Shown here one piece after another: positions 5,165-57,361 of a DNA stretch of 64,000 nt (its first letter is position 1; each line of letters opens with the position of its first letter). Source of the stretch: Ginglymostoma cirratum (Eukaryota); the NCBI GenBank assembly GCA_024137785.1, contig JAHRHZ010000027.1, positions 164,368 to 228,367 on the forward strand. Direction: 5' to 3'. The notes under the pieces are model-generated. The model was not told where the DNA came from. It made no database searches and saw only the letters and a list, made by a program, of their open reading frames with translations. Both the position numbers and the translations under genes were made by a program.

Positions 5165-5488
5165 AAAATGTCTCTTTTCCTGAACTTTAATTTTAATCAC
5201 AACCAATTATCTCATGTTCTGGGGACTCAGTGACAATGTCGTGTGAATCTGCCCGGGAATCCCTCCCCATTCACTACACATCGTCTGAGAAGGCCCCATC
5301 TCAAGATTCAAAGATCTCTGACACCAATAAACTGGATCTACATTGTCAATCCATCACACAGCAACATCATCAATATTACTGCACAGCCTCAAATACTCAG
5401 GGAGCAAAATCCAGTGAAATTGTTCATGTGTCATTTGCCAGGGGAGCAGAGAGAAGCTGTAGTGAGATGATATAAACCAGTAGCATCA
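5165..5488 (+). pseudogene. Gene A: pseudogenised C2 Ig exon, paralog of 12761-13084
   Basis: Same 324-nt length and near-identical core sequence; in-frame TAA at 5188, 5194 and 5473; core Trp TGG>TCG; AG acceptor and GTAAGT donor retained. Confidence 0.9.
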
Positions 5489-9897: not shown

Positions 9898-9934
9898 ATG
9901 TGGACTTTGCTTCTCCTCATTTGTTCCATTCCCG
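9898..9934 (+). CDS. Gene B exon 1: signal peptide MWTLLLLICSIP of a CD300/pIgR-like (MDIR-like) inhibitory receptor
   Basis: ATG in acgATG context, hydrophobic leader, G|GTGAGT donor (phase 1) joining in frame to the V exon to give ...IP-VSGA-LW, a plausible signal cleavage region. Confidence 0.85.
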
Positions 9935-11376
9935 GTGAGTGACCATCTGAGATGTTTATTCCAATAATTAATATTTATTAAAGTCTACTGTCTGGTTTAT
10001 ACAGTATAGAGATGTTTGCATATTTGGAGACATGCAAAAGCACAAAGGAACATCTTGTTGACACAGCAGGTAACATCTTTATTGCAGTGACAAATGCTGA
10101 GAGTTCGATTCTTTCTCCAGCACACTTTCCAAAGGAATGTGCATTCTCACAAAGCCAAACAGGTTCATCATCAACCTGCAAATTTTTCCAACGTGCCCAT
10201 GGCAGGGAGCGATATTGGATGAGATTCCAGGTCAGCTTTATCCAGTGCAGTGTGATACCCCTCAAAATACACAAACTGGTCTGAGGCTGGTGACCTGTTC
10301 CAGGAAGAACAAACTGCAGAAAACAGAAGCACCATGTGCTTTGACTGAGGTTCAAATGAAAAAATGTAAAAATACATGAAGAGCATCAGGAAATGTTATA
10401 TCTTCTTCTGAAAATATGATAATATCACAAGACTGTTACCAAATACTTTACAGCTGCATCATTAATTATGAATAAAATAAAGAAAAGGACAGCATGATGT
10501 TTTTTAAAGTGATTCAAACAGCATCATCAGTTGAACTGGTCCAAAGTTTTAAATGTTCAATATACACTGAAAACTGGTGAGGTAGTAAGCTGTCAATCTA
10601 AACATCTTGGGTTTGCTTTCATTTCTTTCACTGTGATGGAACAATTAATTCAATATTGTTTTGCAAGGTTGTGTCAGAAAAGAAGATGGTTTGTTTATAT
10701 TTCTCTTCCCATAAGAAGGCTATTTCCTTTCTGTCTTTAACTTGAACAAAGTTCTTTCATGTCCATCAATTATCACAATTGTAATTGGAACACTGCAATC
10801 ACATTATTGTTCAATATTGCCACTTCCCCTTCGTTTATAATGAAGCAGAGATGAACACGCAAAGTATTAAAGTTCCCAGGGCCGCAGCTCAGTGAAATAT
10901 TACAGGAAATCTTTCTGCAACAGATTGAGGCTCAAGCTCACCAATTTCATGCAGAATACTTTACAGACAGAAAACCGACGTGTGCCTCTGTGTGTTCAGC
11001 AATCCTCTTCAAGACTTCCTTTTTCAATAAGAACTCGAATTCGTGACTTCCATCAGCTTTAATTGTTCATGCATTTTCCCCCTTTCTCCTTACCTCTCAA
11101 CCACTTCATTTTATTTTAAAATCCTTTCTTTCGTTTCGGTTGAGAATTGTTTCCCACGCTATCATATCTTTTGAAGTAAAGTTTATCCAATCATCAACAG
11201 GCTGCCCCTCTTCTACACCAGGACACAATGTGGCAGCAATTTAAACATTTTCTCATGAAGTATCTCTCCAGAAAAATCAGTAAATTCCTTCTGTTATTTT
11301 ACTATCCTTGCACTGATAGCAATGTTTGATTTCAAATAATCCTGCCTTTACTGCCCTCAAGGTTCTGCACATTGAC

Positions 11377-11730
11377 CATAGATCATAGAATCCCCACAGT
11401 GTGGAAACTTGCCATTCGGCCCAACAACTCCACAACAACCCTTTGAGCAGCGTCCCAGTCCCATTCCGCTCCCCTATCCCTCTAGCCCTGCATTTCCCGT
11501 GGCTAATGCACCAAACCTACTCACCCCTGAACATTATGGGCAAATTAGCATGGCCAATCCACCGAACTTGCACATCTTTCGACTGTGGGCGGACACAGGA
11601 GCATCCAATGGTAACCCACACAGACACAAGGAGAACGTGCAAACTTCACACACGGTTGCTTGAGATTGGTAAAGGAACAGGGTCCCTGGCGCTGTGAGGC
11701 ATCAGTGCAAAACATTGAGCCACTGTGCCA
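11377..11730 (-). mobile_element. HE1-like tRNA-derived SINE in intron 1 of gene B
   Basis: Reverse strand starts tggcacagtggctcaatg...tcacagcgccagggacc and ends in a CR1-like gattctatgatctatg tail; another copy at about 18722-19055 (+). Confidence 0.82.
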
Positions 11731-12289
11731 TCTGTGATCGAGCTTCACATTTGTGAACCATCCCTTGCTGAACTTCAAATCTCTCCTTTAACTCCTTGAG
11801 GCCTCTCATAATCTTCCTGTGTCACATGTTGCATCTTCCCCTCAAGACCTGGAAATTCAGCCCCTCAGCACACCACGAGTCGACATACTCCCCTCTCCTC
11901 CCTGATTGAAACTCTCCCTCTCCGGTCAGAATAAGAACCCTTCAGCGCCCATAGCCTCCTTCACACTAATCCCCAGCCGACTCCAATCCAGGCCTGACAC
12001 TCAGACTGCTCTTCAGGAGTTACACTTCGATGGTGCCACACACGGTGGACTTAGAGCCAACATTGCTTAACACAAGCCCAATTTCAAGGCTGCCCCAAAA
12101 CTTGACCCATTGGGTATGACTGTTTAAATCATTCCCTGTGAATCTGGAACACTCAGAGGTTCTGATGAGGGTTTATATAAATTATTATCGTCATCATAAA
12201 CTAGATAGAATGTAGCTGATTACAATGTATCCATCCATGTTAAGCACTTCTTTAGAAATTTCCAAATCTCTAAAATATTTTCTCCTCAG

Positions 12290-12610
12290 TTTCAGGTGCT
12301 TTATGGGCAGAGAAAGACGTTATGGGAATTTTGGGAAGAGCGATCACAATACATTGCCACTACGAAGCACGGCGGTACCAGTCACACATTAAATATTGGT
12401 GTCGCGGATGGACTCGTCAGTGTCATGTTATAGCAACAACAAACTGGGCAAATGGGAGAATATCCATCACTGATAACAAAACACAAGGAATATTTCTTGT
12501 TTCAATGAAGAAGCTTCAATGGGGAGATGCAGGATGGTACAGCTGTGGGATTGACAAACCTGGCATTGCCACTGACCCAATGTTTAATGTAAAGCTGCAC
12601 ATCTCAGAAG
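12290..12610 (+). CDS. Gene B exon 2: V-set Ig domain, CD300/pIgR/FcmuR-like
   Basis: tctcctcag acceptor; G-x-A-I-T-I-H-C-H-Y, KYWCRGWTRQC (extra C-C' Cys pair typical of the CD300/pIgR/TREM group), RISITDN, DAGWYSC; GAAG|GTACAT donor; phase 1-1. An in-frame alternative acceptor lies 6 nt downstream. Confidence 0.93.
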
Positions 12611-12760
12611 GTACATATGTCTCACTGATATTATTTCAATTTTTATTTCTGCTGATATGTCTGATCAATACCTTATCCAAGAAACAAGATAACAAAGTGT
12701 TGGAGAGTATTTGATTTTTCGATGGCAGTCGATTTCTCAACAATTGTTTCTTTCCTACAG

Positions 12761-13084
12761 AAACTGTCTCTGTTCCTGAAATTCGATTTTTGTCACAACC
12801 AAATGTCTCATGTTCTGGGGGCTCAGTGAATATCTCCTGTGAGTCTGCCCAGGGATCCCTCCCCATTCACTACACATGGTCTGAGAAGACCCCATCTCAA
12901 GATTCAAAGATCTCTGACACCAATAAACTGGATTTAAATTGTCAATCCTTCACACAGCAAAATCATCAATATTACTGCGCAGCCTCAAATACTCAGGGAA
13001 CAAAATCCAGTGAAATTGTTCATGTGTCAGTCAACAATGTAACAGAGAAGAACTGTTGGTATACAATACACATCGACAGCATCG
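12761..13084 (+). CDS. Gene B exon 3: C2-type Ig domain (FCRL/PECAM-like)
   Basis: tttcctacag acceptor after a 150-nt intron; GGSVNISCESAQGSLPIHYTW...YYCAASN; ATCG|GTAAGT donor; 324 nt, phase 1-1. Confidence 0.92.
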
Positions 13085-15215
13085 GTAAGTGTGAAGCAAA
13101 CAATATGATTTATTTTTTATTGAATGTGTATTGAAACTGTTTGCATTTTATCTCACTCTGTAAGACTGTAATTGATAAAACGCACTCCATTTGTTTCATC
13201 GCCAGTTCTGAACAAAACCAACGGTTTGCTTTGTTCTTCAAAAATGAGCAGGTACGTAAGATATTACCCACTGCATGCATGAGCATTGTAATAACTCCAA
13301 TAATCCCCGAAAATTAAAAAACGTTTGATTGACGGACAATTTGAATTTGTCTACCAGATCAAATTATCAAATTCGGTAAGTCACTATTATGTCCAGATTT
13401 TGGGCAGATATTGGGTATAGGTTGGAAGTGAGTTGTACAAATGAAATATCTGCAAGTATTGACTGCAGGCATTTCCTGATATGATCTCCTGTTCGAGCTG
13501 TCAGAGAAGAAGCAGGTCAGCATCAAGTAGCAATGACACACATAAACTGTATTTGTAACTATCAGCAGCGGCTCATGTGGCTGCACTCTAACATTTATCA
13601 CAAACATGCTGTGTGTTCAAGTTCCCCTTTGGGGTTAAAATGCAGCTGGATACCACTGCCCAGCAGAGAGAGGGAATGCTGTGCTCTTGCAGCTGAGACA
13701 GTGTCGATGAGGTGATAAACTGAGAACCTGTTCACCCTTTGGGATAGCATCATTTGTAAACTATTTGCAGAATGGAGGCTCTCCTGGTGTCCAAGCAAGC
13801 ATTCCTTCCTCAATCAATGTTGATAAAAACAATCAGATTTTTGAGAGAATTACTTCAATTCTGTTGGCTGCATCTAAATTACCTTCTACATATTGCTGCA
13901 TTACAACTGTTTGCTACCTTCAACTCAGTACTTCATCGATAGTGAGGTATTTTGGTGTCTCCTAAGATCCTGTAAGGCACTATTTGGTTCATTAATGTCC
14001 TTTCACGAAGGAAACATGCAGCCCTTCCCAGCTCTGGTCTACATGGGACTCCAGCAATGTGCTTGATTCTTAACTGCTCTCTTCAAAAGGCCTAGAAAGC
14101 CAATCAGACAGGGGTAATTCAGCATTGGCAGCAAAAGCTGGCCAACAAAGAATAGACAATCAAACTTTAACAATGTATTTATTAAAACGCAACACTCCCA
14201 AGCCATGTTGTCTGAATACTCTGTGGAGATGTGGTACCTCATTTGTCTGTTTCATGGATCGTCAAAGATCAGCCAATGGAAAATCACTGAAAGGTTATGT
14301 GTCTGTGGATGGGGTTTCACATTATTCCTGAAACCTCAGAAAACTGACCCCAAGAGGGTAGAATTGACCACAGCCAATATCAGCAAGCGACAGCTCCATG
14401 TGAAACTCATGGTTTTAAAAAGTGGGATATCTGTGTTGTAGTTACCAGCTCAAAACCTTTAACAGAACCCAGATTTAAAGACATCAACTCTCAGATTTGG
14501 GAAAAATAGTAAAAAAATTGTCTGTGTGTGGAACCACAGAACATGGGAGAGATACTGAACCAAACTTTCATATCAGTTTTCACTGTGGATAAAAACACGG
14601 ATGCTGGGGAACTCGGGGATATAAATATTGATGTCTTGATAACAGTCCACATTGCAGAAGAGGAAGTGCTGAAGATCTTAAAAAGCACAGAGGTAAATAA
14701 ATCGCTGGGATCTGATTAAGCGTATCCCAGGATGTTGTGGGAAGTTTTAGATGAAACTGTGGGACCCTGAGCGAAGATATTTGTATCATCCGCAGTCACG
14801 GTTGAGGTTCTGAGGACTGGAGGCTGGCTAATGTTGTGCCTTTATTTAAGCAAGGCTGTGATGAGAAGCCTGGGAACTACAGACTTGTGAGCCTGACATC
14901 GGTAGTCGGTGAGTTGTTGGAGGGGATTCTGAGAGATAGGATTTATATGCAGTTGGAGAGGGAAGGACTGTTTAGGATTAATCAGCATGGCTTTGTGTGT
15001 GGGAAGTCGTGCCTTAAAAACTTCTTTGAGATTTTTGAGGATACAACCAAAATGATTGATGAGGACAGAGCAGTAGACTTTGTCTACATAGACTTTAGTA
15101 ACAAGGCTCCTCATGGTAGACAAATTTGTAAAGTTAGATCACATAGGATTGAGGGTGACCTTGCCAATTGTATACAAAATTGGCTTGACAGCAGGAGACA
15201 GAGGGTGGTTGTGGA

Positions 15216-16776
15216 GAGACAGTAAGAACTGCAGATGGTGGAGAATCTGAGATAACAAGGTGTAGAGCTGGATGAACACAGCAGGCCAAAACACATCCTA
15301 GGAGCAGGAAGGCTGACGTTTCGGGCCTAGACCCTTCTTCAGAAATGGGGGAGGGGAAGGGGGTTCTGAAATAAATAGGGAGAGAAGGGGAGGCGGATAG
15401 AAGATGGATAGAGGAGAAGATAGGTGGAGAGGAGACTCATAGATCACAGAGGCGGGAATGGAACCTGTAAAGGTGAGTGTAGGTGGGGAAGTAGGGAGGA
15501 GATAGGTCAGTCCAGGGAGGACGGATAGGTCAAAGGGGTGGGATGAGATTAGTAGGTAGGAGATGGGGGTGGGGCTTGAGGTGGGAGGAGGGGATAGGTG
15601 GGAGGAAGGACAGGTTAGGGAGGCAGGGACGAGCTGGGCTGGTTTTGGGATGCGGTAGGGAGAGGGGAGATTTTGAAGCTTGTGAAGTCCACATTGATAC
15701 CATTGGGCTGCAGGGTTGCCAGGCTGAATATGAGTTGCTGTCCCTGCAACCTTTGGGTAGCATCGTTGTGGCATTGCAGGAGGCCCAGGATGGACATGTC
15801 GTTTGAGGAATGGGAGAGGGAGTTGAAATAGTTCACGACTGGGAGGTGCAGTTGTTTAGTGCGAACCGAGAGTAGGTGTTCAGCAAAGCGGTCCCCAAGC
15901 CTCTGCTTGGTTTCCCCGATGTAAAGGAGGCCACAACGGGAACAGCGGATGCAGTATACCACATTAGCAGATGTGCAGGTCAACATCTCCTTGATGTGGA
16001 AAGTCTTCTTGGGACCTGGGATGGGGGTGATGGGGGAGGTGTAGGGGCAGGTGTAGCGCTTCCTGTAGTTGCAGGGAAAAGTGCCGGGTGTGGTGGGGCT
16101 GGAGGGGAGTGTGGAGCGGACAAGGGAGTCCCAGAGAGAGTGGTCCCTCTGGAAGGCAGATAAGGGTGGGGAGGGAAAGACGTCTTTGGTGGTGGGGTCG
16201 GATTGCAGATGGCGGAAGTGTCGGAGGATGATGCATTGGATCTGGAAGTTGGTGGGGTGGTACGTAAGGACGAGGGGGATTCTGTTTTGGTTTTTCTTGT
16301 GGGGAGGGGGTGTGAGGGATGAATTGCGGGAAATGTGGGAAATGGGTGTTCTCGACTGCTGAGGGGAGGAAGTTGCGGTCCTTGAAAAACGAGGACATCT
16401 GAGATGTACGGGAGTGGAATGCCTCATCCTGGGAGCAGATGCAGCAGAGGCGAAGGAATTGGGAATAGGGGATGGCATTTTTGCAGGAAGGTGGGTGGGA
16501 GGAGGTGTATTCTTGGTAGCTGTGGGAGTCGGTGGGCCTGAAACGAATATCGGTTTCTAGGTGGTTGCCGGAGATGGAGACAGAGAAGTCCAGGAAGGAG
16601 AAAGAGGATTAGAGATGGTCCAGGTGAACTTAAGGTTGGGGTGGAAAGTGTTGGCGAAGTGCATGAACTGTTCAAACTCCTCATGAGAGCACGAGGCAGC
16701 GCTGATGCAGTTATCAATGTAACAGAGGAAGAGGTGGGGTTTAGGGCCAGTGTAGGTACGGAAGAGGGATTGTTCC
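15216..16776 (-). mobile_element. Penelope-like element (RT C-terminus plus GIY-YIG endonuclease)
   Basis: LFLCYIDNCI (RT YxDD-like), CTSANVVYCIRCSRCGLLYIGETKQRLGDRFAEHL (GIY-YIG), terminal repeat with hammerhead core. Confidence 0.92.
15312..15345 (-). ncRNA. Minimal type I hammerhead ribozyme motif
   Basis: Minus strand tttCTGAAGAagggtctaggcccGAAACGTCagc: intact core, stem II, palindromic ACGT stem III, GUC site; stem I very short. Confidence 0.65.
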
Positions 16777-17825
16777 GTTGTTTTTTGGACTGGAGGCCTG
16801 TGACCAGTGGAGTTCCGCATGGATCAGTGTAATTTATTAAAAAAATTTGGATGAGAATTTAGGAGGCATGGTTCATAAGTTTGCGGTTGACACCAAAATT
16901 GGTGGCATAGTCAATAACTAAGAAGGTTATTGAAGATTATAAAGGGATCTTGATCAATTGCGTCAATGGGCTGAGGAGTGGCACATTGTGCTATTTCACT
17001 AAATGTGTGGTATTGCATTTTGGTAAAACAAAAAAGGGCAGGACTTATACAATTCACGGGAGGGCCCTGGGTCGTGTTGTCTTGTTGAGCTTGTACAGGA
17101 TGTTCGTGAAGCCACTTTTGAAGTACTGTTTACTGTTCTCGACACCCTGCTACAAGAGGCTTATTACTATATTGAAGTTGGTTCGGAAGAGATATACCAA
17201 GATGTTGCCAGAACAGGAGGATTTGAGTTTCACTCGGCTGGATAGGCTGGGACGTTTTCCACTGGAGTTTAGCAGGTTGAGGTGTGAACTTATAAAGGCT
17301 TCTCAAATCATGAGGGGCATAGATGAGATGAATAGCAAAGGTCTTTTCCCTCGGGTGGGAGATTTCAAATGAGAGGGAATATTTTTAAGGTGAGAGAAGA
17401 AAGATTTAAAAGGGACCCGAGGGGCAATTATTCAAACAGAGGTTAGTTCGTGTGTGGATGGGGACACAGCTAATGACGGGACAGTTACAACATTTAAAGA
17501 TGTTTGAATTAGTAGGTGAATAGAAGAGGTTTGGAGGGATATGGGCCAAATGCAGACGAGTGGGACTAGTTTCATTTGAGAGACTTAGTCAGCATGGTCG
17601 TGTTGAACCGAAGGGTCTGTTTCCGTGCTGTATGACTCAAGGACTCTATAAAATTATCAGGAGAACTAAGTCACTTATAGGTGTCACTGTGACCAGAGAA
17701 GGGGAAATGATGATATCACACAGGCTTTTCTCCAAGTAATGAGCCTCCATTTGTTCATAATGTTCTCTTAGATAATTACCAGTGAAAATGAGGTGAATCT
17801 GAACATCATTCCCTTGTTTCAACAG

Positions 17826-17946
17826 GACAAGGATATATCTGTGACATTTCTTCAACAATACCACCGACTACTACACATTCCCAAAATAAAATTACAAGTT
17901 CTTCTTTCAGTCAAAAGCAAACGTCAGAAGATGAACCCTCTGAAAG
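17826..17946 (+). CDS. Gene B exon 4: Ser/Thr-rich stalk GQGYICDISSTIPPTTTHSQNKITSSSFSQKQTSEDEPSE
   Basis: ttgtttcaacag acceptor, open in phase 1, AG|GTATGA donor in phase 2; a homologous exon and acceptor region exist at 6243. Confidence 0.82.
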
Positions 17947-18721
17947 GTATGATATTCTTTGTTTTGATTCCTTGTGCGAGATTAACAATATTGTTTAACA
18001 ATGCTGGCCAAATGAGTGAAAGTCATTTGTTATTTTGGAAATGAAAATGGTGCTGGGTTTAGATCAGGCTGTTGTGTTAGTTTCACATTGAAGGTCCAAT
18101 TGTATTTGAAAAGCACAAATGGAGAATATTGTTTCTATTTTGTTGGCCTTCAGATTGCATTGCTCATCTCCATTACTTCACCATTAAACTACATGGTGTG
18201 TGATGTACTGTGCTTGGCCAACCTACCTTGCGGCTATGTGTCCTGGAGTGACATTTCAGGATAGTTTCATTCCTGCTGGTGAAAAGGAATATTTGAGGTT
18301 TTATATCTGCACGGTGACAGATAACTTTCAGCGTTAGCCTTTCGCATCAACTTACTCGCCTGAGCTGTCGGGAATGAGCAGCAGGAACTGTGAGTGTGAT
18401 ATAAACACTGAGTAAATAATTCTTTAAAGTTACAAAGGTGATGAAGAGAAAATGACAATTAAGTGTCAGTCACAAATGGAGAATATTGGAAACGCACAGT
18501 GATTTGGTCCACATTAGCGCAGAAGTAGATTAGTGCGGAATTCTTCACAATTCTAGTCCACAGCCGAAACTAAACAAGTCTGTCTGATCATACCTTTCTC
18601 GCAACTTCTGTTTTGCACTCAGGTCTCGAGCATGTTTAGTCCATTTGTTTTTAACCAGATAATATTCTGCGGTACAAAAAGCATTGTAAGTCTATAAATT
18701 TTATTTTAGGTCATATTTTAT

Positions 18722-19055
18722 CAGTGGCCTGGTGGCTCACAGCACCAGGGACCTGCGTCTGACTCCACACTCGGGTAATTGCCTGTATGTAGTTTACACA
18801 TTCTCCCCGTGTCTGTGTGGGTTTCCTCTGTGTGCTCTGGTTTTCATCCCACAGTCCAAAAATGTGCAGGTTCGGTGGATTAGCCTTGCCAAGTTAACCA
18901 TAGATTCCAGGGATTTGTAGGCTAGTTGGATGAGCCATGGCAAAGAGGGTAAGGGGATTGCATCTGGGTGAGATGCTCTTTGGATGGTTCATGGAACTTT
19001 ATGGGCCGAATGGCCTGTTTCAACACTGTAGCGATTCTGTGATTCTATGATCTGT
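18722..19055 (+). mobile_element. HE1-like SINE (degenerate)
   Basis: ctcacagcaccagggacc...cacattctccccgtgtctgtgtgggtttcctc...gattctatgatct. Confidence 0.78.
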
Positions 19056-19244
19056 ATGTCAGTTGTGTAAATTTATGTAAATGAAGATCATCTGAATCTA
19101 ATATCCATTCTTGATACTTGTTGCTGATTTTCAATGGCCATCTGGTGCTCTTTTATTCCATTTTTACAAAGTGAAATTACCACATTTAAAAAAGGTTCAG
19201 TGGTGATACATTCACCTTCGATACCAACGGTTGTGACCTCACTT

Positions 19245-19600
19245 CCCCTTCAGAGACTTGGGCACATTATCAATGCTGAGTCTCCAGTGCAGTACTGAGA
19301 GAGTGCCGCACTGTGGTGGTACTGCCTTCCCTGTGTGATCAGTCCAGGCCCCATCTACCCCTCTCAGGGGAATGTGACAGATCTCATGGTGAAATTCATG
19401 GAAGAGCAGGGCCGTTCTCCCTGGAGACCTGGGCAAAGCCTTTCCTTTACCAATTCCAAATTACATGTTCGTTCATCTAATTATTGTTTATGGGAGCATG
19501 CTGTGAGCAAATTGGATCCCATGTTTGCCATTGCAACAGTTAATATAAATATTCCACTCCCTGCAGTACTTTTGGATGTCCTGAGGTCATAAAAGTCTTT
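19245..19600 (+). mobile_element. Deu-domain (SacSINE-like) SINE relic; similar relics at about 13660-14000, 40390-40720, 48020-48400, 51790-51925 (-) and 54935-55290
   Basis: ccagtgcagtactgagagagtgccgcactg-type core and tggatgtcctgagg-type 3' end recur across copies. Confidence 0.65.
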
Positions 19601-19679
19601 CTTAATATATTTCTTGTGTCAAATGCCCAAGAATCAATTGTGAACAAACACTGTCCCTTTTCCATTCTCTCTATCACAG

Positions 19680-19768
19680 TCTGATTTACATTGTACTCGG
19701 TGTGCTGGGGGCCATTCTGGTTGTCTTTGCTGCTTCTCTACTTTTGTACCTGAGGCAAATGAACAAGG
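19680..19768 (+). CDS. Gene B exon 5: uncharged transmembrane segment SLIYIVLGVLGAILVVFAASLLLYLRQMNK
   Basis: Pyrimidine tract plus cacag acceptor, phase 2 matching exon 4; 24-residue hydrophobic run followed by R/K; G|GTGAGT donor. Confidence 0.9.
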
Positions 19769-19964
19769 GTGAGTTTTAATTTCTCTTCAATCATTTCATT
19801 GTATCTCAATAGCTTGTAGTTGGATATGAAGAGTGTATCAGGGTTAGATCTTCTGATGGCTAGACAGCTGATATTCCGGTACAGTCAGGAGCTGCATGTG
19901 GAGACTCTGAAGATTCTCCATTGTAGCAGACACTGAAGGAATTGCCTGGAAAATTGAATGTTTG

Positions 19965-20305
19965 TTTTTATTCACTCACGGGATGAGGGCATCACTGTCT
20001 AGACAGCATTTATTGCCCATCCCTAATTTCCCAGAGGGCAGTTAAGAGTCAACCACATTGCTGTGGGTCTGGAGTCACATACAGGCCAGACCAGGTAAGG
20101 ATTGTAGTTTCCTTCCCTAAAGGGCATGAGTAAACTAGATGGGTCTTTCCCCTGACAATTGATTTATGGTTATTAATTTCAGATATTTATTGAATTCAAA
20201 TTCCACCATCTGCCATGGCAGGATTAGAACCTGGGATCCCAGAATATTATGTGGGTCTCTCGGTTAACAATCCAGTGACTATCCCACTAGGCCATCGCCT
20301 CCCCA
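19965..20305 (-). mobile_element. tRNA-derived SINE with L2-like tail; copies at about 46340-46645 (-), 57930-58295 (-) and 36975-37155 (+)
   Basis: Minus strand gggaggcgatggcctagtgg...ggttctaatcc (A/B-box-like); conserved gttaagagtcaaccacattgctgtgggtctggagtcacat in all copies. Confidence 0.8.
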
Positions 20306-20626
20306 CTAGACAATTCCTCAACACTTGGAACCATCCATTTATTTCAGAGATTTCCAATAAAATGAAGTAAAATTGTTATTCAGTGAAAGTGAGACAAATA
20401 AATACATGGTCTAACTTCTGAGTAACTATTCAACTGACCCTACCGAACTGCAGCTTCCCAAGACTCCTCACAGCCCTCACTCTCATGTTGGGAATCATGG
20501 GTGAAATGGTGATGAATGTTGTCCAGTATATAATTATGCACCCTGCAATACATGCTCAGTTTAAAGATTTTAAACATTTAACATTCCTGTTAAATTTGCT
20601 TGAATGATTGTATTTTAATGTTTCAG

Positions 20627-20679
20627 GTATATTCTGCATCACATGTCAACAAAGAGATAAGACTTTTAATGATGACCTG
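20627..20679 (+). CDS. Gene B exon 6: juxtamembrane cytoplasmic exon GIFCITCQQRDKTFNDDL
   Basis: tttcag acceptor, CTG|GTAAGG donor; its phase 1-to-0 is exactly what is needed to join the TM exon to the ITIM exon. Confidence 0.78.
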
Positions 20680-21259
20680 GTAAGGATAATAAATATTAAC
20701 TTGCTGAATATGGGTTAGAAATTTGCAGAAAAAGGATTTACAGCACAGAAATGAGCAATTCGGTCCAGCTGTTGCTCTTATGTTCCACACAAGACTTCTC
20801 CCAATTCTCTTATCTAACCCCATCAACTTCTAACTCCTGTCTTCTTCGCATGCTTATCAAGTTATCTCTCAAATATAGCAATACAACTTGACTCAACTGG
20901 AAAGAAGTAGACAATTCAGGAGAAAGGTTGTTATCTGAAAAGTGTCAAAAGGTGGAACCTATTGCCGTGAGGGGTCCATGAGGCAAATATGATAAATCCA
21001 TGTGGAAGGGCAGCTGGATAAGCACATGAGTGTGAAATGAATACCATTTGTTGATGAGAGTGGATGAAAGTGGACAGAGAAGGCTCAGTAGGAGAATTAC
21101 TGCAGTACTGGGTTGAATTGTCTATTCTGCACTGTAAATAATTTTTAATATCTTCTGACACTGTCTATTGATTAGTGATAATCATGAAATCACTTTCTCT
21201 CTGTAACAGCACAAATCACGATTCAAGTGAATCAAAAATACATTTTGTTTCAATTTTAG

Positions 21260-21571
21260 GAACTGGCATCAGTGGAAAAGAACATGGTATATGCAAACAT
21301 TAACCACATTCAAACGAACACAGCAGAAAGACAGAGAGAGAGAAGAGACAACTTGAAAAATGATGAAATCATATATTCGGCCTTGGAGTTTCAAAAGAAA
21401 TCTTCATCAGTGAGAGGTGGGCTGGCAAGGCACACAGTTGACAACTCCAACAGTGTCATCTACAGTGACCTCAATTTACCAAACCAGCCCCCAAAGGGGA
21501 ATAAGAAAGCCCCGCTACACAATACTGCTCAGGGAGCTGAAACGGTAGTTTATGCTGACATTGGATTTTAG
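21260..21571 (+). CDS. Gene B exon 7: cytoplasmic tail with four ITIM-like motifs (MVYANI, IIYSAL, VIYSDL, VVYADI) and stop
   Basis: caattttag acceptor in phase 0; ORF to TAG at 21569-21571. The seven exons sum to 1257 nt = 418 aa plus stop, with no internal stops. Confidence 0.9.
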   Translation, partial: ELASVEKNMVYANINHIQTNTAERQRERRDNLKNDEIIYSALEFQKKSSSVRGGLARHTVDNSNSVIYSDLNLPNQPPKGNKKAPLHNTAQGAETVVYADIGF

Positions 21572-28425: not shown

Positions 28426-28687
28426 TTTCTATGTTTACTTTTCTAATATTTGATGTTGCCCAAGTTGAAGTGATGCTTATAGCATACTTTTAATGCTAAG
28501 TGTGAAGTCCCCTGGGCCATGTAAATTTTACTTAAGTCAGATATAGTCTGTGTTTAGGCAGCCCAAGGCTCACCGTCTCATCGGATTGTGACACTTCCTG
28601 GTATGTTTAACTTGAAATTCACGAGAATGACAAAACTGTGAGCTTGCCAGAAGATTTGGTCAGGTCACCAACATCCCCTAGGAAAAT

Positions 28688-29681
28688 GAGATAACAAGGC
28701 GTGGGGCTGGATGAACACAGCAGGCCAAGCAGCATCATAGGAGCAGGAAAACTTGACGTTTTGGGCCTAGACCCTTCATCAGAAATGGGGGAGGGGAAGA
28801 GGGTTCTGAAATAAATAGGGAGAGAGGGGGAGGTGGATAGAGGATGGATAAAGGCGAAGATAGGTGGAGAGAAGACAGACAAGTCGAAGAGGCGGGGATG
28901 GAGCCAGTAAAGGTGAGTGTAGGTGGGGGGGCTAGGGAGGAGATAGATCAGTCCAGAGAGGACGGACAGGTCAAGGGGGCGGGATGATGTTAGTAGATAG
29001 GAGATGGGGGTGGGGCTTGAGGTGGGAGGAGGGGATAGGTGAGAGGAAAAACAGGTTAGGGAGGTGGAGATGAGCTGGGCTGGTTTTGGGATGTGGTTGG
29101 GGGTGGTGAGATTTTGAAGCTTGTGAAATCCACATTGATACCATTGGGCTGCAGGGTTCCCAGGCTGAATATGATTTGCTGTTCCTGCAGCCTTCACGTG
29201 GCATCACTGTGGCATTGCAGGAGGCCAAGGATGGACATGTCATCTGAGGAATGGGAGGGGGAGTTGAAATGGTTCGCGACTGGGAGGTGCAGTTGTTTGT
29301 TGCGAACTGAGCGCAGGTGTTCTGCAAAGCGGTCCCCAAGCCTCCGCTTGGTTTCCCCGATGTAGAGGAAGCCACAACGGGTACAGCGGATGCAGTATAC
29401 CACATTGGCAGATGTGCAGGTGAACATCTGCCTGATGTGGAAAGTCTTCTTGGGGCCTAGGATTGGGGTGAGGGAGGAGGTGTGGAGGCAGGTGTAGCCT
29501 GCGGTTGCAGGGAAAAGTGCCGGGTGTGGTGGGGCTGGAGGGGAGTGTGGAGCGGACAAGGGAGTCTAGGCCCGAAACGTCAAGCTTTCCTGCTCCTATG
29601 ATGCTGCTTGGTCTGCTATGTTCATCCAGCCCCACACCTTGTTATCTCGGATTCTCCAGCATCTGCAGTTCCTTTTATCTC
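28688..29681 (-). mobile_element. Truncated Penelope-like element (GIY-YIG) with inverted terminal copy and TSD
   Basis: ANVVYCIRCTRCGFLYIGETKRRLGDRFAEHL; terminal sequence repeated in inverted orientation at 29564-29681; TSD ccctaggaaaat at 28676-28687 and 29682-29693. Confidence 0.92.
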
Positions 29682-32459: not shown

Positions 32460-33700
32460 ACTGTTCAGGTCAAAGGTATGGACATGGCTGCTCACATAGG
32501 CATCAGTTATGTTGGTCTCTTTGTGGGGGACGTGGAACATTCCTTGTACAATCCTACTCCCATCAAAGCTCTTTCTCCAGTATGTCGATGATATCACCGG
32601 TGTTGCTTCCCTCTCTCATCCGGGATTTGAAACCTTGATCAACTTCACTTCAAATTTTCACCCTGTTCTCACCTTCATCTGGTCTACCTTGGACTCCTCC
32701 CTCCCCTTCCTCAACATCTCTCTTTCCATTTCTGTGGATAGTCTGGCTATCAATATCCACTATAAACCCACTGACCCCACAGTTACCTCAACTATGCATT
32801 CTCACACACTGCTTCCTCTGCAGACTTTATTCCCTTCCCTCTGTATCTCCATCTCCGTCTCTGTTCCAATGATGCCTGCTTCTAGAATGGGATCCAAGAA
32901 ATGTCCACATTCTTTTGTCAGCCCAAGGATTCTCCAGCACCATGGTTGGAAAGGCCCCCCACCCATGTCCAACACAACTTCCACACTTCTGCCTTCGCTC
33001 CTTCTCTTCCCTCCTACAACAACAATAGGGCCCCCTGCATCCTCACCAACCATCCCTCCAGCATCCACATCCAAAGGATCACACGTCACCATTTCTATCA
33101 TCTCCAATGGGATGCCACCACCAGACACATATTCCCCTCCCCTCCTTTGTCAGCTTTTCACAGGGACCATTCCCTCAAGGACAGCCTGGTCCACTCCTCC
33201 TCCACTCCCAACACCCCCACAGCACCTTCCCATGCAATCTCAGAAGGTGTAATACCTGCCCATTTATTTCCTCCCTCCTCACTAATCAAGGTGAAGCGGC
33301 GATTTACCTGCACTTCACACAATCTAGTTTACTGTATTCGCTGCTCACAATGTGGTCTCCTCTACACTGGGGAGATGAAACGCATACAGGGCAAACACTT
33401 TCAGAACGTCTGTGCTCTGTCTGACAATGACTCCAAGCTTCCGTTGCCTCCCACTTCAACACATTACAGTGTTCTCTGGCCAACGTTTCTGTCACAGACT
33501 TCTACCTCCACCCACCTCTACCACCTCCCCACCTTGCCTACAGCATCGCTACCACTTTTTCCAAGCTGCTATCAGTTCAGCTGAAGCGTCACCGGATGTG
33601 AAATATTCAGTCTGCTTTCTTCCCAAAGAAACTGCCAGACCTGTTCAGATTTGGCAGCAATTTCTGGTTTTGTTTCCGATCTCCATCATCAGCTTCTTTG
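32460..33700 (+). mobile_element. Penelope-like element relic (RT plus GIY-YIG)
   Basis: FLQYVDDI, HYKPTD, NLVYCIRCSQCGLLYTGE; frameshifted. Confidence 0.88.
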
Positions 33701-34889: not shown

Positions 34890-36330
34890 AGGAGAAACAG
34901 AAAAAGCCGGAGAAACTCAATGGGTCTGGCAACATCTGTGGAGAGAAGCAGAGTTAACATTTTGGGAGCAGTGTCTTATCTTCAGAACTAACGACTGGGA
35001 AAGGATTAATATATATGAAGACAAGGGGAGAAGAGTTAATGATAGGTGCAGATGGAGCCCAGAGAGAGAGAGAGAGCAGCAGCTGGGCAGACAACGGAAT
35101 GGATAAAGGTGAGTCAGGGAGAAAGAAAAGCTGCCAATGAGGACTATTAGTGGGTGAACATGGGGTGGCTGTATTGAAAGCAGCCCATGTGCTAAGGGCT
35201 GAGGACATGGGTAAAGGACATGGAAGAAGGTGCTCAGGGCCTAAAATTACTGAATTTGATGTTGAATCCTGAAGGTTGCAGGATTCCTAATTGGAAAATG
35301 AGATGCTGTTCTTCCAGTTTGCACTGAGCCTCGCTGGAGCAGGCCTGAGGCAGATATCTAGACCATTGGTATATTGAAGTGGCAGGCAACCAGAAGCTCA
35401 CAGCCATTTTTGAATGTAGATGTTCTGCAAAGTAGTCACCCAGTCTGTGCTCCATTTCACCAATATTGAGGAAACGAGCAGGGAATACAGAAACTAGATT
35501 GAGTGAAGTGCAGTTAAATTGCTGCTTTACCTGGAGGTTGTGTCTGGGGCCTTGGATAATGAGGATGGAGGAAGTAAACAGGCAGGTGGTACACCTTCCG
35601 TGATTGCGGGGGAAGATGGGTGTGTGGGAATGTTGGGAGTGGAAGAAGTGGACCAGAGTGTCCTGCAGCATGCTGACAAGTGAGGGGAGGGGAATATGTA
35701 TCTGGTGGTGGCATCCCATTGGAGGTGGCAGAAATGACGGCTAATGATCCTCTGCATGTTGGTGGGATGGTAGGTGGGAACAATGGGGACCCTATCACTG
35801 CTGTGGGAGGGAAGGTAGAGGGCTGAGGGCTGAAGAGCAGGAGATGGGTTGGACACAGCTGAGGGCCCTGTCACTATGGTGATGGGGAATCCTCTGTTGA
35901 GGAAGACAGTGTGCATTTCGGAGGCCCCTTTTGTCAAAGTTGGCCTCCTCAGGATAGATTTGAGAGAGGCAGAGAAACTGAGAGAACGGAACGGATTAGT
36001 GTCTTTACTGGAAGCAGAGTATGAGGATGTATCGGCCAGGTAACTGTGGGAGTCAGTGGGTTGATGGGGATATTAGTGGTCAGCCTATCCCCAGAAATGG
36101 AAACAAAGATCTTGAGGGAGGAAAGGGAGGAGTCTGAAGTGGACCAGGTAAGTTGAGAGCAGGGTGGAAATTAGAAGCAAAATTGGGCAAGTTTTCCAAT
36201 TCTGAATGAGATAGTGAGACAGCACTGATGATGTCATTGATGTACCGGGGAAAGAGTTGTGGCTGGAGTCCAGGGTAGGACTGGAACAAGGAATATTCTA
36301 GGTATCCCACAAAGAGACAGGCACAACTGG
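34890..36330 (-). mobile_element. Penelope-like element relic
   Basis: FPRYINDI, FLNRGFP, IGEMEHRLGDYFAEHL, KLEEQHLIFQLG. Confidence 0.86.
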
Positions 36331-56995: not shown

Positions 56996-57361
56996 TTTCA
57001 GGTGCCATATTAACTGGACCAGCTGTCATAAATGGATCGGTGGGACAATCAGTTACTATCAGGTGTAAATACAACAAATATTACAGAACTTCTCCAAAGT
57101 ACTGGTGCAAAGGTGACAACAGGGAAGACTGTGTCATTCTAATCGAAACCCAAGGCCCGAGGAAGACAAATTCTGGTGGAAGAATAACCATAGCAGTCGA
57201 CAATGATGCAGGAGAATTCTTTGTCACGATGGAACGCTGAACAAAAAATAACCAAGAGTTGTACTGGTGTGGAATTGCAAGGTTTTTGTGGGACCTGTTA
57301 AGTCCTGTGGACTGTACATTAGTGATGGACAGACTTTCACCTCCTGGGATCCTCCCTGAAG
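56996..57361 (+). pseudogene. Gene C: CD300/pIgR-like V exon with premature TGA
   Basis: cag|TTTCAGGTGC start shared with gene B; GQSVTIRCKY, KYWCKGDNREDC, RITI; TGA at 57238-57240, after which the same frame continues TKNNQELYWCGIA (DxG decayed). The 3' end is uncertain: phase-1 GTAGGA donor after 57361, or a lost donor near 57327. Confidence 0.85.

Follow-up and report, generated by a model that had tools for sequence, protein, structure and literature searches.

A probable MDIR2-type inhibitory receptor gene in the shark Ginglymostoma cirratum

The locus and its closest described relatives

MDIRs (modular domain immune-type receptors) form a multigene family with inhibitory and activating members, whose ectodomains are built from CD300/pIgR/TREM-like and Fc receptor (FcR)-homologue-like immunoglobulin (Ig) modules (PMC3031540). 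They were first described in skate, a description for which PMC3031540 cites Cannon et al. 2006. In teleosts, holosteans and the coelacanth a family named DICPs (diverse immunoglobulin domain-containing proteins) has been reported, with ectodomains of the form D1-D2 or D1a-D2a-D1b-D2b in each domain of which four cysteines are conserved, forms carrying immunoreceptor tyrosine-based inhibitory motifs (ITIMs), forms with an arginine in the transmembrane (TM) helix and an organization in clustered multigene families (10.1101/2021.06.11.448072). Here we describe a locus at positions 9898-21571 of a 64 000-nt stretch of the Ginglymostoma cirratum genome (contig JAHRHZ010000027.1), which is referred to as the window throughout. 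We consider it probable, and hold this with good confidence, that we are dealing with an intact gene which encodes a type I TM inhibitory receptor of the MDIR2 type within the MDIR family of cartilaginous fishes; its most likely orthologue is Chiloscyllium plagiosum LOC122563080 (P0199 in our numbering of homologues). An earlier note on this DNA had proposed an MDIR-like receptor as well, reading the acronym as ‘mixed-domain receptors’; the name given in the literature is the one used above.

The gene is composed of seven exons on the + strand. All twelve splice sites were read straight from the sequence and are canonical GT-AG sites, the exon phases (1, 1, 1, 2, 1, 0) are mutually consistent, no exon contains an internal stop and the codons split across junctions encode Val or Gly, Glu, Gly, Ser and Gly. 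Depending on the acceptor used for exon 2, the coding total amounts to 1254 nt (418 amino acids, acceptor at 12290) or 1248 nt (416 amino acids, acceptor at 12296). The encoded layout consists of a signal peptide, a CD300/pIgR-type V domain, a C2-set domain, a Ser/Thr stalk, an uncharged TM helix and a tail that bears four tyrosine motifs. With the 12290 acceptor this direct reading bears out the stop-free frame of 418 amino acids over seven phase-consistent exons that had been claimed before. Only three of the exons can be seen as open reading frames (ORFs), as the earlier note had also stated: the ORF list contains a V-like frame at 12322-12714, a C2-like frame at 12790-13134 and a tyrosine-rich frame ending at 21571, all on the + strand. 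Frames were verified exon by exon, and all searches were carried out with single exons or database homologues and not with the joined protein.

Exon 1 (9898-9934) contains the ATG and most of the signal peptide, MWTLLLLICSIP, plus 1 nt, and ends in phase 1 at the donor G/GTGAGT; it corresponds to residues 1-13 of P0199 at 85% identity and also aligns with the leaders of family members. Exon 2 (12290 or 12296 to 12610, donor G/GTACAT) encodes the end of the signal peptide (VSG) and the V domain. Its two tandem acceptors are 6 nt apart (ctcctcAG/TTTCAG/GTGCT, positions 12288-12296); with the upstream site the leader is longer by Val-Ser, and with the downstream site both residues are lost. Use of the 12290 acceptor gives back the ..PVSGALW.. 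leader that is found in most homologues. At this site the orthologue models differ from each other: P0209 from Chiloscyllium punctatum contains the Val-Ser pair, while P0199 takes its leader from the downstream acceptor and lacks it. Exon 3 (12761-13084, acceptor cctacAG/, donor G/GTAAGT) encodes the C2-set Ig domain followed by the membrane-proximal segment NCWYTIHIDSI, with five cysteines that are conserved in the family. An alternative donor for this exon at 13037 (AAT/GTAACA) was rejected, as it has the wrong phase and loses the conserved NC.Y segment.

Because the phases of the flanking exons demand one exon (phase 1 to 2) between the C2 domain and the TM helix and another one (phase 1 to 0) between the TM helix and the tail, we searched for exons 4 and 6 by enumerating AG...GT intervals with an open frame and reasonable splice signals. 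Exon 4 (17826-17946, phase 1 in and 2 out, acceptor caacAG/, donor AG/GTATGA) was the top candidate of this enumeration, and tblastn places the stalks of P0199, P0019 and P0002 there; it encodes a conserved G.Y.C motif and then the Ser/Thr-rich stretch of the stalk. Exon 5 (19680-19768, phase 2 in and 1 out, acceptor cacAG/, donor G/GTGAGT) encodes the TM helix LIYIVLGVLGAILVVFAASLLLYL, which has not a single charged residue, followed by RQMNK. A hydrophobicity scan of the three + frames between 13085 and 21300 found it to be the sole TM-like stretch (19 residues, strongly hydrophobic), and the exon is 70-86% identical to shark homologues. Exon 6 (20627-20679, phase 1 in and 0 out, acceptor tttcAG/, donor CTG/GTAAGG) is preceded by a strong polypyrimidine tract and encodes the juxtamembrane cytoplasmic segment GIFCITCQQRDKTFNDDL. 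Three other candidates for exon 6 were rejected: 21210-21226 (17 nt), which would leave an intron of 33 nt, and 20042-20094 and 19988-20094, which have no counterpart among the homologues. Exon 7 (21260-21571, phase 0 in, acceptor tttAG/) encodes the cytoplasmic tail of 103 amino acids and ends with a TAG stop. As the matches to P0199 place all seven exons in order, we regard exons 4 and 6 as settled.

Orthologue and family membership

The closest overall relative is P0199, an ‘uncharacterized protein’ of 414 amino acids, to which all seven exons are collinear by tblastn. Its residues 1-13, 7-225, 222-263, 262-294, 294-310 and 312-414 fall on the seven exons in order, with E-values of 1.7e-105 for V plus C2, 2.8e-45 for the tail, 1e-9 for the TM helix, 0.002 for the stalk, 0.007 for exon 6 and 0.015 for the signal peptide. 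The identity amounts to 79% for the V exon, 81% for the C2 exon, 81% for the TM exon, 65-67% for exon 6 and 77% for the tail. Such a match over seven exons is far beyond chance. P0199 is itself a computational gene model and has no described function. No non-Ig gene that could be used for synteny was found in the 64-kb window.

To place the gene in a broader context, the C2 exon was compared by HMMER with 1.84 billion representative proteins, which gave 505 matches, 23 of them below 1e-30, and the best ones also carry a V domain. Linked V and C2 domains occur in about 35 representative clusters (50% identity). Homologues were named by word-indexed full-length searches with family members. We found them in Chiloscyllium, Hemiscyllium, Rhincodon, Stegostoma, Scyliorhinus, Carcharodon, Cetorhinus, Mustelus, Heterodontus and Heptranchias, further in several rays and skates, Pristis and Callorhinchus, and also among the products of skate cDNAs that are named ‘Modular domain immune-type receptor’ 2, 3 and 5. 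The database names of the homologues vary between ‘pIgR-like’, ‘Fc receptor-like protein 5’, ‘CMRF35-like molecule’ and ‘uncharacterized’. The earlier note had presented the receptor as novel unless it matched a described one. This novelty is now largely removed, since skate MDIR2 shares the architecture, as do genes predicted in over 15 genomes of cartilaginous fishes.

When compared with skate MDIR2 (Rostroraja/Raja eglanteria; P0212, 416 amino acids), the locus shows 55% identity in the V domain (2e-40), 55% in the C2 domain (1e-35), 52% in the TM helix and 29% in the tail (1e-7), all in the same order. Both proteins are of similar length and consist of a leader, a V domain, a C2 domain, a Ser/Thr stalk with a C.Y...Y.C motif, an uncharged TM helix and a tail with tyrosine motifs. 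The skate protein differs in that its first tyrosine motif is lost (AARVNL) and that extra sequence is inserted between motifs 2 and 3, in addition to the low identity of its tail. In the original description MDIR2 and MDIR3 are said to bear ITIMs, and the MDIR domains reportedly resemble CMRF35-like molecules, pIgR, TREMs, NKp44 and FcR homologues.

As far as can be judged from the sequence, the gene displays every MDIR feature that we examined. The similarity is collinear over ectodomain, TM helix and tail; the ectodomain is composed of a CD300/pIgR/TREM-like and an FcR-homologue-like Ig module; and the gene belongs to a multigene family with ITIM-bearing inhibitory forms (P0199, P0019 and P0212) and activating forms that carry an arginine in the TM helix (P0002 and P0020). 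Relics of family exons lie in the same window as the receptor gene. The proposal of an MDIR-like shark receptor is therefore upheld by the collinearity with skate MDIR2, the ITIM tail and the uncharged TM helix. Assignment to the MDIR2 type is the most likely placement, to judge from pairwise identities and collinearity.

Domains, cytoplasmic tail and proposed function

The V exon is recognized by the Pfam V-set model with 2.6e-9. Among the proteins of the PDB its best single-domain match is CD300f/CLM-1 (56.5 bits, 2.8e-14), followed by CD300a, TREM2, TIM-4, FcmuR (4e-5) and NKp44, and pIgR reaches 3e-37 when summed over five domains, with 41.7 bits for its best single domain (D5) and 28-33 bits for D1. 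The second cysteine pair has the form YWC-x6-C (YWCRGWTRQC), and the F-strand reads DAGWYSCG. A Cx6-7C motif is common to CD300, TREM and pIgR (10.1101/2022.04.21.489081). The matches to CD300f and pIgR, together with the Cx6C motif, confirm the CD300/pIgR-type V domain that had been named before.

The C2 exon is more difficult to label. Its top Pfam model is PF17736 (Ig_C17orf99) with 29.7 bits at a cut-off of 26 bits, followed by Ig_3, and its best PDB match is FCRL5 (1.6e-27 summed, 23.6 bits for the best single domain, about 25-30% identity), with weaker matches to FCRL4 (0.003) and CD22 d6-d7 (0.06). Against PF17736 the FCRL5 of hyena scored 171 bits over four stretches, while a CD22-like fish protein had no individually significant stretch; for this reason we take PF17736 to behave as a model of FCRL-type C2 domains. 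Since PF17736 is matched by FCRL5 and, above the cut-off, by the shark C2 exon, the Ig domain of IL-40 (human C17orf99) also looks FCRL-like. In the ESM Atlas the neighbours of the C2 exon are C17orf99-Ig, FCRL2 and CD22-like clusters. The exon keeps all nine invariant residues of the family alignment, and an AlphaFold2 model built with a family alignment of 40 sequences shows a C2-set fold with a predicted local distance difference test score (pLDDT) of 92.2. The structural neighbours of this model by VIA-align are CD22 d3 (Z 9.0), NTB-A (8.7), CEACAM6 (8.6), FCRLA (7.6) and FcgammaRI (7.4), and Foldseek gave a similar picture of generic C2-set domains. The designation ‘FCRL-type’ used in the earlier note thus holds at the level of sequence, where FCRL5 is the best match and PF17736 is passed, but it is a soft label: by structure CD22, CEACAM, NTB-A and FCRLA lie within about one Z unit of each other, and the domain cannot be separated from the C2 domains of CD22 or CEACAM. 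We suggest ‘FCRL-type’ as the best available sequence label, although it is not an exclusive one.

These domain matches bear on the question of whether the protein is an Fc or polymeric-Ig receptor, the V domain of which would bind shark IgM, IgW or IgNAR while the ITIM tail would give negative feedback similar to that of FcgammaRIIB. The matches of the V domain to pIgR D5, pIgR D1 and FcmuR fit such a role, as does the fact that the nearest solved relative of the C2 domain by sequence is an Fc-receptor-like protein. However, the best single-domain match is CD300f, a lipid-binding inhibitory receptor, which beats any single domain of pIgR, and by structure the C2 domain has generic neighbours. 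The receptor also differs from pIgR in its architecture. It shares the type of V domain with pIgR and FcmuR, and NCBI names many family members ‘pIgR-like’, but pIgR is composed of two to five V-type domains without C2 and has a tail with transcytosis signals and without ITIMs, whereas the shark protein combines one V domain, one C2 domain and an ITIM tail. All in all we regard an Ig receptor as unlikely.

The FCRL family resembles the shark protein in that the C2 exon is nearest to FCRL5, PF17736 is common to both and ITIM tails are present. FCRLs and classical FcRs, however, consist of C2 domains only and lack a CD300-type V domain, whereas the N-terminal domain encoded here is of the CD300/pIgR type, and even the C2 identity is only about 25-30%. 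Mammalian CD300a and CD300f (CLM-1) share the closest single V domain, the Cx6-7C disulfide, a stalk of mucin-like character, a TM helix without charge and several ITIMs in the tail. They differ by having only one Ig domain, a single V followed by stalk and TM helix, whereas in the shark gene the V domain is separated from the stalk by a C2 domain. By analogy, CD300a and CD300f would be the best model for the working of the shark receptor, although it cannot strictly be called a CD300.

We analyzed the tail for ITIMs using the consensus (S/I/V/L)xYxx(I/V/L). Three motifs are canonical: IIYSAL (21368-21385, motif 2), VIYSDL (21455-21472, motif 3) and VVYADI (21545-21562, motif 4), the last one being located two residues from the C terminus. 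The remaining one, MVYANI (21284-21301, motif 1), is only ITIM-like, with Met at position -2 instead of S/I/V/L, so that of the four ITIMs claimed previously three are canonical. The spacings between the four tyrosines are 28, 29 and 30 residues, and their positions can be aligned in sharks, skates, sawfish and elephant shark, although motif 1 is lost in skates. In the orthologues motif 1 is canonical (LVYANI or IVYANV); motif 2 is kept as I(T/M)YAA(L/V) in sharks, skates and chimaera, motif 3 is kept across the family and motif 4 is kept as xxYA(T/S)(V/I). P0199 has a non-canonical residue at -2 of its fourth motif (DVYADI), whereas in the G. cirratum gene it is the first motif that departs. 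ITIM-bearing inhibitory receptors have at least one such cytoplasmic motif and a TM helix free of charged residues, and the shark protein shows both.

A possible mode of action can be drawn up from ITIM receptors such as CD300a and CD300f. The membrane-distal V domain would bind a ligand on another cell or particle, whereupon Src-family kinases would phosphorylate the ITIM tyrosines. The phosphotyrosines would recruit the SH2 phosphatases SHP-1 and SHP-2 and possibly SHIP, and the spacing of about 29 residues between the tyrosines would suit tandem SH2 engagement. The recruited phosphatases would then damp the signals of activating receptors, for which the MDIR paralogues with an arginine in the TM helix, e.g. 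P0002 (TM VWDVIRWVLF), are plausible targets. CD300 proteins and DICPs both bind lipids. Since CD300f is also the nearest single-domain relative, a lipid or some other self or altered-self ligand would be our first guess, and by this analogy it seems somewhat more likely than an Ig.

Surroundings of the gene

The window contains two further exon-like sequences of the family, both on the + strand. At 5170-5487, upstream of exon 1 and adjoining fragments of long interspersed nuclear elements (LINEs), we observed a decayed C2 exon that is 71% identical to exon 3, contains three in-frame stops and has lost the invariant Trp to Ser (HYTSSEK); we read it as the relic of another gene of the family. 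The second one is a CD300/pIgR-type V-like exon at 56998-57330 (KYWC-x7-C, ..LYWCG), which is 31% identical to exon 2 and has one in-frame stop in the E-F region. Apart from these exons, the third intron of the receptor gene contains retroelement debris that does not code for any part of the receptor: between 14836 and 17372 an element on the - strand, which carries a GIY-YIG (Penelope-like) endonuclease, divides a LINE-type reverse transcriptase fragment on the + strand. Pfam finds RVT_1 at 14836-15222 (+) and GIY-YIG at 15618-16478 (-), and between 14001 and 18000 both the G+C content (0.46) and the GC skew (+0.30 to +0.39) are raised. Three more ORFs with a GIY-YIG signature of the type CxRCxxxYIGET were observed at 28619-29635 (-), 32901-33584 (+) and 35234-35937 (-), from which it follows that the GIY-YIG element is abundant in the window.

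Several observations weigh against an intact inhibitory receptor, and most of them would fit a silent or recently dead copy, i.e. a gene whose frame is still open but which is not expressed or is spliced in another way, as happens in receptor arrays with fast birth and death of genes. To judge by the decayed C2 exon and the stop-bearing V-like exon, gene death is common in the window, and 2.5 kb of retroelements have accumulated in intron 3. A search of 5.8 billion proteins with the tail exon returned no matching protein fragment (transcript-derived), and no G. cirratum protein was present among the matches of the full-length homologue searches. Of the tyrosine motifs, the first one does not fit the ITIM consensus. 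Furthermore, ligand binding, phosphorylation and phosphatase recruitment are all proposed by analogy, and in the literature that we searched no function, ligand or signalling partner of an MDIR was found. Nevertheless, all seven exons are open, canonical signals stand at all twelve splice sites, the C2 exon retains every residue that is invariant in its family and three ITIMs are intact. The short and fast-evolving exons 4-6 are still recognizable against P0199, and a frame of 418 codons over seven exons would not be expected after long neutral decay. A silent copy is therefore, in our view, rather improbable. It is very improbable that the main product is a soluble or otherwise different isoform formed by skipping of the stalk and TM exons. 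In its favour, the 346-residue model P0209 passes from the C2 domain straight on to exon 6/7 sequence and has neither stalk nor TM helix, and the tandem acceptor of exon 2 indicates some splice flexibility. However, a transcript that skips exons 4 and 5 would stay in frame but put the ITIM tail on the extracellular side, where it would be of little functional use. Moreover, P0209 may be wrongly annotated, and most homologues (P0199, P0188, P0174, P0019 and MDIR2) have the full layout.

Age of the V-C2 module

Returning to the preferred reading of an intact MDIR2-type receptor, we considered how far its combination of domains extends beyond the cartilaginous fishes. Single-stretch matches of the C2 exon of about 57 bits (E about 1e-10, whole library) were obtained from seven bony vertebrates, namely coelacanth (P0106), paddlefish (P0114), Pleurodeles (P0115 and P0268), Umbra (P0117), Arapaima (P0119), the caecilian Rhinatrema (P0130) and gar (P0254). 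These scores far exceed that of any single FCRL domain. The proteins carry a CD300-type V domain, a linker of the type EEPVS.P, a C2 domain with the conserved cysteines, the C.Y...Y.C motif of the stalk and an arginine-containing TM helix with the pattern W-x-x-(I/V/L)-R-W, and the activating forms of sharks share these features. The V-C2 architecture spans sharks, rays, skates and chimaera, and V-C2 relatives are found in gar, paddlefish, teleosts, coelacanth and amphibians. Because cartilaginous fishes and bony vertebrates both have it, the supposed chimera of V and C2 is an old module and not a new fusion. Thus, the earlier designation as a chimeric-domain receptor is correct in that a V and a C2 domain are combined, but the combination is old and widespread.

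The TM motif in its longer form, W-x-x-(I/V/L)-R-W-x-L, was observed in activating-type relatives from sharks to amphibians and also in a sturgeon protein that has V domains only (proteins concerned: P0002, P0020, P0106, P0114, P0117, P0119, P0130, P0254, P0268 and P0243). This motif may mark the use of a common signalling adaptor.

As far as the published description goes, the architecture of the bony-fish DICPs parallels the V-C2 and V-C2-V-C2 forms of MDIRs. No entry named DICP was present among the members of the homologue clusters or in the ESM Atlas clusters. It is possible, and we propose this tentatively on the strength of sequence comparisons, that the V-C2 unit represents one arm of an unnamed paired-receptor lineage which is as old as the jawed vertebrates and not a peculiarity of cartilaginous fishes. 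If this is true, the skate MDIRs, the unnamed V-C2 proteins of bony vertebrates and possibly the teleost DICPs would be one family, and the mammalian CD300 genes could derive from it by loss of the C2 domain.

Taken by itself, the G. cirratum gene changes little, as it enlarges by one intact inhibitory member a family that has been known from skate cDNAs since 2006 and can be seen in all annotated genomes of cartilaginous fishes. Since the copy is clean, its exon model complete and its orthologue clear, it would be a reasonable choice for the experiments on ligand and signalling that the family still needs. The presence of the V-C2 module and its stalk motif from sharks to amphibians bears on the origin of CD300, pIgR and DICP-type receptors and may be of interest to comparative immunologists.

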